A DNA stretch of 62,961 nt, counting the filler, from Neoconidiobolus thromboides FSU 785 (lineage: Eukaryota; Fungi; Entomophthoromycota): the NCBI GenBank assembly GCA_025603075.1. It is 11 parts of 11 records of this genome, joined end to end, with 100 filler letters (N's around TTAATTAATTAA, not from the genome) between each part and the next. Parts side by side here need not be neighbours in the genome. Positions count along the whole stretch, not along the records: positions 23,872 to 33,515 come from MU626658.1; 10 more parts are not named here. The stretch is one strand, 5' to 3'. Shown piece by piece: positions 23,872-33,515 of the stretch. The position numbers and the translations under genes are program-made. The notes beneath the pieces were generated by a model. The model did not search any database. It saw nothing but the letters and a program-made list of their open reading frames with translations, and had not been told where the DNA came from. Position 1 is the first letter of the stretch, and every line of letters starts with the position of its first letter.

Positions 23872-24748
23872 GTAAAAAAATACCATTGCTCAATCCTGTA
23901 AAAAAAGCTTTACGAAACCCTTTCTTACGAGCTAATCTTAGTTTATCCTCATATCTATTCTGTTCTTTTTCCTGAGTATTGAATGAGTAGACTGTTTTGA
24001 TAGCAGATAATACCTCTTCAACTATAGACCCTGCTTCGCCATATACACCTTGGCCATTTTTAGAGGTATCTGCGATATCATGACTTATGAACATACTAAC
24101 AACCCCCATTAGTGGCACTGAAGCTAACATTACTAAAGTTAATTTCCACCCTTTTATAAAAGCTATAACGAAAGCAGCAATAAAGCAGGTAAAATATTGT
24201 ATAAGAAGACCGACTTTATCTGATATGCCATCTTGAACTAAATTAATATCACCGGCTATGCGTGAAGCGATATCGCCTGAAGAAATAGAATCAAACCACC
24301 CCATTTCTTGACTTAAAACCGAATGATAATATTTATTTCTGATTCTTACAGCCTGACTTTCTCCAACCATTAACCAAAATGATAATTGAAAGTAAGCAGC
24401 GGCTGCAGTAATAGCTCCAACTATTACAAACATAATACACAAGAAATCAACAGTCTCTCTTAATGTTTTATTAGCGAGATCTGGATTCTCAGAGTAATTC
24501 TTTTGATAATCACCGAATAAACCAATGGCTTGAGAAAACAACAAAAATAAAATTGGTTGAGATATACCATTAATGATAGAAGCCAATGACGCAAAAGATA
24601 TTAGTAATCTATCTTTAGTTGTAGCAAATTTGAACAATTTAAGGAGAGGTACGTTTTGCACATTTTGTACTTTTTCTTCTTTTCCCTCTAAGCCAATATC
24701 TTTTTCGTTCACTCCGTTATTATTATGTTTCTTATTAAAATTAAACAT
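23872..24748 (-). CDS. ABCB/MDR transporter, N-terminal TMD1 (truncated by a gap)
   Basis: VPLLKLFKFA..NGISQP..QEMGWFDS..RIAGDINLVQDGISDKVG..GWKLTLV..EEVLSAIKTV; open and intronless. Confidence 0.9.
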
Positions 24749-27853: not shown

Positions 27854-27926
27854 GCTCCGTTAGCTCAGCTGGCAGAGCGTGGTGCTAATAACGCTAAGGT
27901 CATAGGTTCGACCCCTATACGGAGCA
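27854..27926 (+). tRNA. tRNA-Ile (AAT)
   Basis: Cloverleaf: acceptor GCTCCGT/ACGGAGC, D arm GCTC/GAGC, anticodon loop CT-AAT-AA, T arm ATAGG-TTCGACC-CCTAT. Confidence 0.95.
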
Positions 27927-28102
27927 ACTATCTCTTTTTTAGAGTAGTTAAGAAAACATTTAACATTTCAGAAATGTATAAAAGTGTTACCAAACCAATA
28001 GTAAAAGTATTTTATTTAAATACATATTAAGTTTGTTTAGTTATTCAAAAATTAAGCCTAACAAATAAATTTAATAGTTAATTTTAATCAATATCTTTCA
28101 TT

Positions 28103-30467
28103 TCATCTTCTCCTAGGTGGTAAAGAGGGTGGTAACTTAACTCCAAAATTATTATTTTCGTCGTTCCTTTTAGGTGGCAAAGGTGGCGGCATCATAGGCG
28201 AATTGGTGTATTTAACAGAATTAAAACTACTAGTGCTGTGTAATGGTGTATTTGAATAATTAAAATTTTGACCAGTAGCATTACTCTTATTGGAGCTGTT
28301 TACCATATTATGATTTGGAAAAGTAGAAAATGGTGGACTGAGATTAGTGGGAGATAAAGTAGTTTGGGGAATAGTATAAGGGGATGGATTTAGATTTGGA
28401 CTATAATTCGAAACATTAGGAAATGGCATTATTGGCATACTATAATAATTGAGATTGGGATTTGTTGGTGGTAATTGCGGCATTGATGAGATATCAGCAT
28501 TTTGAAATTGAGGAGAAAAGAAATTAGAAGGAGAAGGTGGTAATTGAAATTGGGGCTGTAGGTGATATTGTTGATCTGGAAGGATGAGATGGACTGGCTC
28601 GTTTAATAAACTTAATAATTGGTGAGCATTTGGTCGATTTTCTGGCTTTGGATCCCATGTACGATCCAATAACAAATGATATTGTTGATTTATTAGATTC
28701 TTGTTTGGTGTTATGTTATTTTTCATATTATTATAAACTTCTTCTTTGGTTAATTTATCGTAAGGCAGTGTTAACGAAAATAAACTAAAAAATAATAAAC
28801 CATAACTATAAATATCATAGTAATAATTTGATATGATTTGATTAGAACTGTTAACGTAATATGGATCCAACCAAATTAATTTACTTAATGGTATATTATT
28901 TGCATCATTTTTATATAGATTAAATATAGAATAATTGTTGACATCATTATTGGTGCTGTTTAGTTTTACTGAAAATTCGAAGCCTGTAATTTTTCCTCGA
29001 TTACTTTCAGTGATTAAGATGTTATATGCGTTTAGGTTATTATGACTGAAATTACGAGTGTGATGGAGATAAACTAAACCGTGTGCGATGTCTTCCATCA
29101 AGGTTAAATTGAACTCCACTCCTTTATTTTTGCCACACTTTATATAATCATATAAACAACCACTAGAAGTAGTTTCAACTAAAACTGAGTAAGGATAAAA
29201 GTCAGGCATCCCAAAGCTAGAATCCGTTATTCCAAATAAACGAACAACATAAGGGGATCCCTGTAAATTATGTAGATTGGCTATCTCTTTTAATATCATT
29301 TTTAAATTATCTTGATATTTATTTACATAACTTTTTTCTTCAACCAACTCTACACATCCTGGAAAATAGATTTTATATTTTTTTATTTTATAGTGCTCAA
29401 ACTCATTAACGCTTTTATCTTTGTTTAAACTGTCTTCTTGAACTAAATTACCACCTGGAATATAATGGGTTTTCAGAAATGCTTTGAACTCCTCACTTAA
29501 TATACTATAAGGCTTTTCTATTTTCATTTCTTCTATCCCTTGTGTTAGTTGATGTACCTCATCCTTCTTAATATTACTAATGACACTATTTACATTCAAA
29601 CTTACTTCTTGCTGCGTCTTTGTATCTTTGGAACTAACGTCATCTAACTTTTGGCACACTTCTTGTTGAGTATTAATGTCAGTTGAATTAACCCTATTCT
29701 CACTTTTTGTTCCAATCATATTGGATTGTTCTTGACCAACAACCACATTCTCTGACTTTGAATCATTTAGAATACTAATACTACTTTCAGCATTATTAGC
29801 ATTTAAATCTGAAGATGATGGTATGTCATTTTCTGGTTGATTTAAAGTTAATTTAGATGGCAAAGCTTCATTTTCTTTCTTATTTTTAGATTCAGCGCTA
29901 ATTTCTGTTTTTTTGTCTTCATGGTTCATATCTGTAGTTACTATACTCTCATAAAATAATTATAATTACTTCTGATAAAAATTTACCTTTATTGTCAACC
30001 TTAATTTCATTTTGAACAACCACGGAATCTAATACTTTATCCTCTTCAACCATGGCTTGCATGCTCTTCTTGGCCTTTTCAAAGTTTAATCTTTCAATTA
30101 AGCATGCTTCAGTGTCTAATTCAAAAATGGCTTGTTCGATATCATTTAAAATAGAGTAAAGTGCTTTTTTATGATTTTCTGAATTTAACATATTAGTGAT
30201 TGCATATTTTTTATTCAATGCTTGCACAAATTCTAAACAAGATGCTAATATTGATAAATAATTCTTAACTACAATCCCTAATCGTTTTGTATTGGGCTCT
30301 TCCTCGGCGTCAAAATTCTTTTTAATATCCTCAATTATTAATTCGCCTCTCTTTACTTTACGGGTAATTTTACTCATTTGTCCAGTAAGTATTTTGGTTT
30401 CTTCTCCTTCAGATATTAGCTCCCTACCCACCTCGATGCATTGACATATATCCAGTAAGACTGTCAT
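28103..30467 (-). CDS. MLKL-like protein: N-terminal four-helix bundle + low-complexity linker + TKL-type pseudokinase + Pro-rich tail (772 aa, one intron)
   Basis: A 46-nt GTAAAT..TATAG intron at 29941-29986 joins ORFs 29949-30467 and 28103-29929 in frame (NK-G|TA-TTD-MNH). Kinase subdomains are recognisable (DIAHGLVYLH, DIYSYG, WDPKPENRP), but HRD->HNN, DFG->GFE and APE->DPY. Confidence 0.75.
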
Positions 30468-31105
30468 TGTCTTGTTATATTCTTACAATAAAAGATGTTT
30501 AAACCTTTATAACTTGTATTATCTAGTATTCAAAGATTTAAATGAATACTGAATTTTTATTGGCTGTACTAATTATTAAATCATTTTTCTTATTAAATTT
30601 TATTGAGAGTAATTTTGCTTTCAAACCACTGTAAATGTCATCAAAATTAAAACTTAGTTTCAACGCAACTATTTAAAATAAATTAATATTTGAAGTGAAA
30701 TAATGAGCTAAAGAAGCCTTTATTGTATTTAATATGGCTATTAGATAAATTTAAAAGTGATTTATATTAAAGGATAGAATTGTTTTATCATTAATAATTT
30801 AATTTAATTTAATGTTATGACAAATATAGGGGAAAATATAACTGTTTTTGAACCTTGATATTTTCCAGAAATCAAACTTCATAGATAGATTTGAAATTTT
30901 TTATATCAATTTTTATTTATTGTTTATATAAATGCCATTTTTCTAACTCTAGAGCTTTGATTAAGGATGTTAGATTTTCACTGCTCAAATATATAAGGGT
31001 ACTGATTCTTTGTTAAACTACCAAGTCTAAGAGGCATGTGTTTTATTTAAGGTATTATTGAGTTTGCTTAAAGTATGGTAATCTTGGTAGATTGGAAAAC
31101 TATAT

Positions 31106-33080: not shown

Positions 33081-33515
33081 TTAAAGGGATTGATTTTGAA
33101 CTAAAGATGTGTAGAATCCATTAAGTGTTAAAAGATTATCATGAGTGCCCATTTCTACTTTTTTACCATCTTTCATAACAATAATTATATCGGCATCTTG
33201 AATAGTGGACAAGCGATGGGCAATAGTAATTGTAGTTCTACCTTCTGAAGCTTTATCCAAAGCATCCTGTACGACTTTTTCAGATTGAGAATCTAAAGCG
33301 GAAGTAGCTTCATCAAGTAGTAATAGCTTTGGATTTCTAATGAGTGCTCTAGCAATAGCTATTCTTTGTTTTTGACCACCTGAAAGTCTACCACCACGTT
33401 CACCACATGAAGTATTGTAACCATCTGGAAGATCCATGATAAAATCATGTGCATTAGCCATTTTAGCTACATGGATAATTTCTTCTTTTGTGACATCTCT
33501 TTCTACTCCGTAAGC
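33081..33515 (-). CDS. ABCB/MDR transporter, C-terminal NBD2 fragment (enters from a gap)
   Basis: [38 protein letters not shown]. Confidence 0.9.

Follow-up and report, generated by a model that had tools for sequence, protein, structure and literature searches.

An MLKL-like pseudokinase encoded by a two-exon gene of the fungus Neoconidiobolus thromboides

Does a fungus of the Entomophthorales encode a protein built like MLKL, with a four-helix bundle at its N-terminus and a kinase-like domain behind it, and could such a protein work as a switch of the same kind? The question is raised by a minus-strand gene of Neoconidiobolus thromboides FSU 785 (GenBank assembly GCA_025603075.1) at positions 28103-30467 of the window, by which we mean the whole stretch of 62,961 nucleotides (nt) that was analysed; the gene lies in a 9.6-kb piece of it taken from record MU626658.1. 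A preliminary description of this DNA had proposed that two open reading frames (ORFs) form here one protein of 772 amino acids (aa) with the full MLKL architecture. The explanation that we favour overall, with a probability of about 0.6, is an expressed two-exon gene for a cytosolic, 772-aa MLKL-like protein in which, as we infer, the pseudokinase gates the bundle.

One expressed two-exon gene

The ORF list holds two minus-strand entries, the first with its ATG at 30467 and 172 codons, the second with 608 codons from 29929 to 28103. They are separated by a 46-nt intron (29986..29941, minus strand; GTAAAT...TATAG, GT..AG, 17% GC, phase 1), and upon its removal codon 160 plus one base continues into the frame of the second ORF. 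The spliced coding sequence (CDS) comprises 2319 nt, and its 772-aa product is identical in every letter to P0001, deposited as a 'kinase-like protein' of N. thromboides FSU 785. The initial methionine is invariant in 9/9 relatives.

Contigs of four public RNA-type runs (X1-X4) from two studies, three of the four derived from a slightly different strain, were mapped on positions 27950-30650. Those of all four runs omit precisely positions 29941..29986 (read as CT..AC on the plus strand and as GT..AG on that of the gene), and a single 2285-nt contig of run X1 spans both exons, covering 28132-29940 and 29987-30426. The contigs therefore show the very joint for which an RNA-seq check had been suggested, and the claim that a 46-nt intron joins the two ORFs into one 772-aa protein was borne out. 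The wording 'hidden by an intron' was wrong, since the public annotation already carries the fused 772-aa model.

If the two ORFs were separate genes, their fusion would be an annotation artefact; the unspliced first ORF does stop after 172 aa, and the second carries an ATG of its own. Against this, contigs of four runs bridge the exons with the exact 46-nt skip, and in the homologues a single protein contains the two domains. In Entomophthora muscae the orthologue is one ORF of 710 codons without interruption, so the two halves are one protein irrespective of the splice prediction. The two-gene reading, to which we leave next to no chance, is refuted by the spliced contigs and the E. muscae ORF, and the locus is one expressed two-exon gene. 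Transcripts of the second strain differ from the window CDS at 20 places, 14 of them synonymous and 6 non-synonymous; the resulting pN/pS of ~0.1 indicates purifying selection on the gene. The genome match of a run X2 contig ends 16 nt upstream of the ATG (~30483, in the 5' untranslated region, UTR) and is followed by 32 unrelated letters, which could reflect a 5'-UTR intron or a strain difference.

A four-helix bundle and a pseudokinase collinear with MLKL

Relatives were sought by exhaustive phmmer with aa 1-165 against 1.8 billion representatives. This search returned P0004 of E. muscae (7e-22), P0005 of Massospora cicadina (1e-15), and P0006 (2.5e-10) and P0007 (9.6e-5), both from Logan assemblies, and a further search added P0009-P0011, among them another E. 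muscae protein. A word-indexed homologue search with residues 1-165 returned solely the protein itself. All relatives found share the N-terminal domain and have a kinase-like domain behind it, and P0004, P0005, P0006 and P0007 each join a pseudokinase to the bundle. Neoconidiobolus, Entomophthora (two near-identical copies) and Massospora have one orthologue per species, and the family is conserved in Entomophthorales.

A profile of nine full-length family proteins (A4) was searched against PDB sequences. Its positions 5-482 were aligned in one stretch with residues 2-469 of human MLKL 6lk5 (144.8 bits, E 4.8e-41), and its positions 4-485 with residues 6-464 of mouse MLKL 4btf (134.8 bits, E 5e-38); apart from a tandem EGFR chain, which is artificial, no PDB match was better than these two. 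The family motif K[IL][ST]GFEF is aligned with KLAGFEL of MLKL, and the LH-x-N loop with LHGK (human) or LHRN (mouse). Judged from the sequences, the protein resembles MLKL in its domain order and motifs, and the kinase domain alone does not prove orthology. That this is a fungal protein with the MLKL architecture from end to end, in the sense of architectural identity, is very probable; the earlier claim to this effect agrees with the collinear profile alignment, the MLKL_N/HeLo-like bundle, the GFE pseudokinase and the single-gene transcripts.

For the N-terminus, hidden Markov model (HMM) profiles of the family were searched against all 177,635 distinct PDB sequences. The top seven matches of the N-terminal profiles A1 and A3 were human and mouse MLKL chains (E 0.005-0.14), with a few weaker, unrelated matches behind them. 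Pfam MLKL_N (PF22215) matched the N-termini of 7/9 relatives in constant register, below or near threshold (best E 1.1e-6), and is present in the precomputed annotation of P0011. HMMER aligned GRELISEGEETKILTGQMSKITRKV onto MLKL and NYLSIL... onto RFKAAL..., reproducing the alignment to the MLKL N-terminus that had been made by eye. Two lysines invariant in the family, K33 and K37, fall in this alignment on Arg30 and Arg34 of human MLKL. In a feature search with the ESM language model, MLKL_N clusters came first (score 0.93, 182-184 shared features). A four-helix bundle at the N-terminus, homologous to MLKL_N, is thus found at the level of the family.

The hallmarks of a HeLo/HELL executioner (a Pfam match, a transmembrane-prone N-terminal helix, an amyloid motif or NLR context) were not found, and the likeness to that group is one of fold only. 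No match to Pfam HeLo or Helo_like_N was obtained at E<=10 in any of the nine relatives, and the N-terminus, MTVLLDICQCIEVGRE, holds charged residues; its helix is not transmembrane-like.

An AlphaFold2 model of the bundle, built on a five-sequence alignment, had a predicted local distance difference test (pLDDT) score of 81.7 and a predicted template modelling (pTM) score of 0.72, with helices at 3-23, 28-51, 60-91 and 96-154. The comparison with MLKL structures proposed in the preliminary description found this confident four-helix bundle close to the solved MLKL bundles: VIA-align gave Z 12.5-13.5 at a root-mean-square deviation (rmsd) of 1.9-2.9 A, with Z 13.5 for 6zz1 and Z 12.8 for 4btf (rmsd 1.9 A over 100 residues). 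AtMLKL2 (Z 12.9), the NRC2 CC domain (Z 13.1) and the NRG1 CC-R domain (Z 11.7) scored in the same range. In an unbiased, Foldseek-independent VIA search of 48,161 chains, MLKL took ranks 2 and 3. Among Swiss-Prot models the nearest to the bundle were RPW8 and HR proteins, and about half of the top 30 fold clusters in AFDB were HeLo-like 'Fungal N-terminal domain', 'Mixed lineage kinase domain-containing', PigL_N, DUF7792 or HeLo. From the sequence profiles, the predicted fold and the language-model features taken together, the N-terminal domain belongs to the MLKL_N/HeLo-like/RPW8 four-helix-bundle superfamily, and by sequence it is nearest to MLKL_N.

The second half of the protein matches Pfam PK_Tyr_Ser-Thr (1.1e-20) and Pkinase (2e-17), in an alignment that begins only at profile position ~40. 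The preliminary description had noted a retained beta3 Lys/alphaC Glu pair, a lost Gly-rich loop, HNN for HRD and GFE for DFG, and all of these can be read from the sequence and the family alignment. The beta3 Lys is invariant; the alphaC Glu is present in the subfamily of the window gene only. The Asp of HRD and the Asp of DFG are both absent in 9/9 relatives, which have H-x-N or H-x-S in the catalytic loop and an invariant G-[FL]-E at the DFG position. After GFE, the activation segment contains Ser/Thr residues at S484, S489 and T490. In the AlphaFold2 model the C-lobe is confident and the N-lobe poorly defined.

The domain thus has the features of a pseudokinase that lacks the catalytic Asp, carries GFE for DFG and keeps the beta3 Lys, and of those expected of an active TKL/TK kinase (Gly-rich loop, VAIK Lys, HRD Asp, DFG Asp) the Lys alone is present. 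Some kinases without canonical motifs are active, and the beta3 Lys, the subfamily's alphaC Glu and a catalytic-loop Asn at position 467 might be taken as signs of an atypical active kinase with a non-canonical mechanism, the N-terminal bundle then being only a regulatory or dimerisation domain. This we consider very improbable and have rejected: none of the nine relatives has either the HRD base Asp or the Mg-binding DFG Asp, there is no Gly-rich loop, and the degenerate N-lobe is modelled poorly. The kinase domain is, on these motifs, predicted to be an old, conserved and catalytically dead pseudokinase.

A brace-like helix had been claimed behind the bundle, and helix 4 of the AlphaFold2 model does run on in a brace-like manner to ~155; what follows is ~150 low-confidence residues and, ahead of the kinase, a helix at 306-319, so that the connector is a helix plus ~150 disordered residues and not the compact brace of MLKL. 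Within the linker, helices are weakly predicted at 252-258 and 270-296, and in the relatives P0006 and P0007 the linker is far shorter. The full-length model (pLDDT 50.9, pTM 0.38) is too poor to judge how bundle and pseudokinase would dock.

The paralogous proteins P0007, P0009, P0010 and P0011 (E. muscae and other assemblies) share the bundle; their connector to the HKN/GFE pseudokinase is short, and Sel1 repeats lie at the C-terminus. This is the same bundle/kinase/Sel1 architecture as that reported for 'MLKL family' matches in Glomeromycotina (PMC8778642). At the E. muscae orthologue locus (L001, 10001-12133) there is no intron. The Massospora model (L002, 10001-11929) extends over 1929 nt for 556 aa, which means that this gene has introns, and it is without the Pro-rich tail, which a truncated model may explain.

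A possible switch and its rivals

From N- to C-terminus the predicted layout would be a bundle with a brace-like helix extension, a long disordered linker, a dead TKL-type pseudokinase and a Pro-rich tail with SH3-ligand motifs. The pseudokinase could be a conformational switch that holds the bundle inactive, as in MLKL and the plant MLKLs (PMC12881547, PMC10197012). Nucleotide binding at K363, phosphorylation of S484, S489 and T490 by another kinase, or both, would set it; a signal might then free the bundle, which would oligomerise and insert into or permeabilise a membrane, with regulated cell death or another membrane event as the outcome. That an executioner mechanism of this kind operates here, as the analogy with MLKL proposes, we rate at a little under even odds.

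The tail may add a partner to this scheme. E. muscae orthologues end in APPLPPHKK or APPLPPCKK, and a C-terminal PPLPP[KH][KR] motif is conserved in P0001, P0004 and P0008. These E. muscae ends, like PPPLPPKR and KLPPSLPPRRR of the N. thromboides protein, agree with the class II SH3-ligand consensus, and the motifs suggest that the tail may recruit the protein to an SH3-domain partner.

Several results weigh against an MLKL-like switch and are set out here together. Unrelated bundles resemble the bundle model as closely as MLKL does (IncA Z 13.4, HSL N-terminus 13.5, Cbl TKB 12.4). Foldseek of the model against the PDB gave no match at E<=0.001, with IncA, designed repeats and G-protein-coupled receptors intermixed with MLKL; because unrelated helical bundles score alike and the Foldseek E-values are weak, the fold by itself is not decisive. 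The N-terminus of P0001 alone matched no Pfam family at E<=1, did not reach the gathering score of PF22215 and, by phmmer with residues 1-160/165, had no match among PDB sequences at E<=10. The suggested HMMER check against MLKL_NTD profiles therefore succeeded for the family and not for P0001 alone, and the link from the bundle to MLKL_N runs via the family profile with marginal E-values (0.005-0.08). MLKL bundles have basic patches that bind phosphoinositides; the bundle of P0001 is acidic, with a net charge of -5 (relatives, -1 to +6). The connector contains the disordered insert of ~150 aa, and the interdomain packing is beyond the model. Within the 9.6-kb piece, no RIPK3/RHIM-like, other RIPK-like, NLR or amyloid-motif gene was found. 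The literature searched yielded no functional study of this protein or of any other fungal protein that pairs the bundle with a pseudokinase. Finally, 1:1 orthology and purifying selection suit a conserved cellular role as well as they suit an immune executioner, and the kinase domain, taken alone, stands no nearer to MLKL than to RIPK1 and barely nearer to it than to SYK.

This last point bears on common descent. A kinase-only profile scored PDB chains of RIPK1 at 116-122 bits, of SYK at 114-118 and of MLKL at 105-121, the best MLKL (~121 bits) and RIPK1 (~122 bits) chains being alike and ahead of SYK, ITK and Eph. As the kinase domain scores MLKL, RIPK1 and SYK nearly alike, a common origin of the whole architecture is not proven. 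The likeness to MLKL might then be convergent, a HeLo-like bundle having been fused independently to a TKL pseudokinase in early-diverging fungi, with GFE arising in parallel, which would make the protein an analogue and not an orthologue. Such an origin would fit the Foldseek search with the full-length model, which put generic TKL/TK kinases such as TNNI3K and FGFR2 first, the linker and tail, which have no counterpart in MLKL, and the frequency with which the bundle is fused to other domains in fungi and plants (PMC9815663, PMC12881547). It accounts less well for the one-stretch alignment with full-length MLKL, which extends through the pre-kinase segment, and for the alignments of MLKL pseudokinase-only chains, which begin ~20 to 50 profile positions upstream of those of RIPK1 and SYK. 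The family and MLKL also share G-F-E, the H-x-N/K loop and K[IL][AST]GFE[FL], and fungal MLKLs group with those of plants and rotifers in a published tree (PMC11476962). We regard convergence as a real possibility, well short of an even chance.

The bolder proposal of descent, that the Entomophthorales family is a true orthologue of animal MLKL which would have retained the GFE switch and be wired to an SH3 partner via the PPLPP[KH][KR] tail, not to a RIPK3/RHIM necrosome, we hold to be quite unlikely. If it were true, a pseudokinase-gated four-helix-bundle executioner would predate the animal-fungal split, and the fungus would offer a tractable, RIPK3-independent model for the release of the MLKL switch.

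Among known systems, animal MLKL (6lk5, 4btf, 2msv, 6zvo) resembles the fungal protein in having GFE for DFG, a lost HRD Asp, a kept beta3 Lys and a bundle that superposes at 1.9-2.9 A. In contrast to animal MLKL, to whose bundle the fungal family profile has weak sequence likeness (P0001 alone having no PDB or Pfam match), the fungal protein has ~150 disordered residues between the brace-like helix and the kinase, an acidic bundle and a Pro-rich tail of 150 aa bearing SH3-ligand motifs; a RIPK3/RHIM partner is not known in N. thromboides. The plant MLKLs (AtMLKL2 and AtMLKL3, 6lba and 6ka4; wheat Pm13) likewise consist of a bundle (HeLo/MLKL_N), a brace and a kinase-like domain. Their structural matches reached Z 12.9 and 11.4 over 130 residues, and plant DUF7792 and MLKL_N clusters are among the nearest neighbours of the fungal bundle; they differ in that their C-terminal extension is of another kind.

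HET-S/HELLP (HeLo/HELL) and the RPW8/CC-R domains of plant NLRs would, by predicted fold, belong to the same bundle superfamily. RPW8-like proteins lead in Swiss-Prot, the HeLo-like 'Fungal N-terminal domain' is among the most frequent named AFDB clusters, and the NRG1 CC-R domain matched the fungal bundle at Z 11.2-11.7. These proteins, however, are triggered by amyloid templating or NLR oligomerisation and not by a fused pseudokinase, whereas the C-terminal partner in the fungal protein is a pseudokinase and no prion-forming or amyloid motif was seen in it.

Fungal MLKL-like proteins are already in the literature, and the N. thromboides gene joins them, being less novel than the preliminary description implied. 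A fungal 'MLKL' homologue, ORX91397.1 of Basidiobolus meristosporus, has been named (PMC11476962), and Glomeromycotina kinase+Sel1 proteins are matches of the TCDB MLKL family 1.A.105 (PMC8778642). HELL domains fused to kinase or pseudokinase domains (PMC12881547) and MLKL_NTD-like domains in basidiomycete NLRs (PMC9815663) have also been described. The named fungal proteins likewise come from early-diverging lineages and combine the bundle with a kinase-like domain. Compared with them (ORX91397.1 by description), the subfamily in the window is without Sel1 repeats, in place of which it carries the long linker and the Pro-rich tail. Its disordered insert and SH3-ligand tail are lineage-specific features absent from the literature found on fungal MLKL-like proteins.

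The foremost rival to the executioner grants the same architecture and removes the killing. MLKL itself has reported non-necroptotic endosomal roles, and on that model the fungal protein would be a conserved scaffold or a membrane-trafficking regulator, in which the bundle gives reversible membrane or protein association and the tail docks SH3 proteins, for example of the cortical actin or endocytic machinery. The single orthologue per species, the purifying selection (pN/pS ~0.1), the acidic bundle (net -5) and the conservation of the PPLPP[KH][KR] motif in P0001, P0004 and P0008 would all fit such a role, as would the long stretches of disorder in linker and tail that scaffolds typically have, and the lack of an NLR, amyloid-motif or kinase partner gene nearby. 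SH3-ligand motifs, however, are short and common in Pro-rich tails, and a dead kinase with GFE is a hallmark of the MLKL switch. Moreover, the characterised proteins most closely homologous to the bundle (MLKL, plant MLKLs, RPW8/CC-R and HeLo/HELL) all act as executioners in cell death or immunity (PMC12881547, PMC10197012). We consider the non-killing role unlikely and continue to prefer the pseudokinase-gated switch.

The annotation can be refined from 'kinase-like protein' to 'MLKL-like pseudokinase', which is not a new kind of system. In the literature found, the experimental characterisation of MLKL-type executioners comes from animals and plants; fungal work has centred on HeLo/HELL proteins triggered by amyloids or NLRs, and fungal bundle-plus-pseudokinase proteins receive passing mentions only. 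The gene is a clean, expressed and conserved example, MLKL-collinear to GFE, in a culturable insect-pathogenic fungus. It lets one ask whether the bundle switch is ancestral to opisthokonts and what controls the switch without RIPK3.

Features of the locus and neighbouring genes

The positions of the gene, of its domains and motifs and of the neighbouring genes are collected in Table 1.

Table 1. Positions in the window of the MLKL-like gene, its parts and the features around it.
Feature	Position	Strand	Description and basis
Exon 1	30467..29987	-	ATG at 30467; codons 1-160 and first base of codon 161; ORF list, sequence, transcript contigs
Intron	29941..29986	-	46-nt phase-1 GT..AG; omitted precisely by contigs of runs X1-X4
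Exon 2	29940..28103	-	Remainder of codon 161 to codon 772, stop at 28103-28105; spliced translation = P0001
Four-helix bundle, aa 1-127	30087..30467	-	Helices 3-23, 28-51, 60-91, 96-127; homologous to MLKL_N/HeLo-like/RPW8 domains
Brace-like extension of helix 4, aa 128-158	29994..30086	-	AlphaFold2 helix 96-154/158, pLDDT falling from 83 to 44
Low-complexity S/N/E/K-rich linker, aa 159-305	29507..29993	-	Includes the intron; predicted disordered, pLDDT <35
Pre-kinase helix (aa 306-319) and predicted pseudokinase (aa ~320-620), TKL/TK type	28562..29506	-	Pfam matches, family profile against PDB
Beta3 lysine K363 (VEEK)	29333..29335	-	Invariant in family alignments
HNN for HRD, aa 460-462	29036..29044	-	Catalytic Asp absent; aligned with HGK of human and HRN of mouse MLKL
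GFE for DFG, aa 480-482	28976..28984	-	G and E invariant in 9/9; on GFE of human and mouse MLKL
Pro/Asn/Ser-rich tail, aa 621-772	28106..28561	-	Predicted disordered, pLDDT <35; 20% Pro, 8 PxxP motifs
PPPLPPKR, aa 745-752	28166..28189	-	Regex scan; fits class II SH3-ligand consensus
KLPPSLPPRRR, aa 762-772	28106..28138	-	Regex scan; C-terminal SH3-ligand-like motif
tRNA-Ile (anticodon AAT)	27854-27926	+	177 nt downstream of the stop of the MLKL-like gene, opposite strand
C2H2 zinc-finger protein, 295 aa	25890-26777	-	Asn/His-rich low-complexity N-terminal half, three C-terminal C2H2 fingers
Trypsin-family serine protease, 260 aa	31727-32509	-	Intronless; Pfam Trypsin 5.6e-47; 1.26 kb upstream of the gene, same strand
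ABC_membrane N-terminal region	23873-24748	-	ABC-transporter fragment, cut by left edge of piece
C-terminal end of ABC ATPase domain	33081-33461	-	ABC-transporter fragment, near right edge of piece

The E. muscae and Massospora loci were without a further called gene within 10 kb, and tblastn with the genes that neighbour the MLKL-like gene in the window found no match there. The trypsin-family protein upstream has a hydrophobic, signal-peptide-like N-terminus and is plausibly a secreted protease of the insect pathogen. Each edge of the piece carries an ABC-transporter fragment, and the locus is therefore flanked by two multidrug-resistance (MDR)-type ABC genes.

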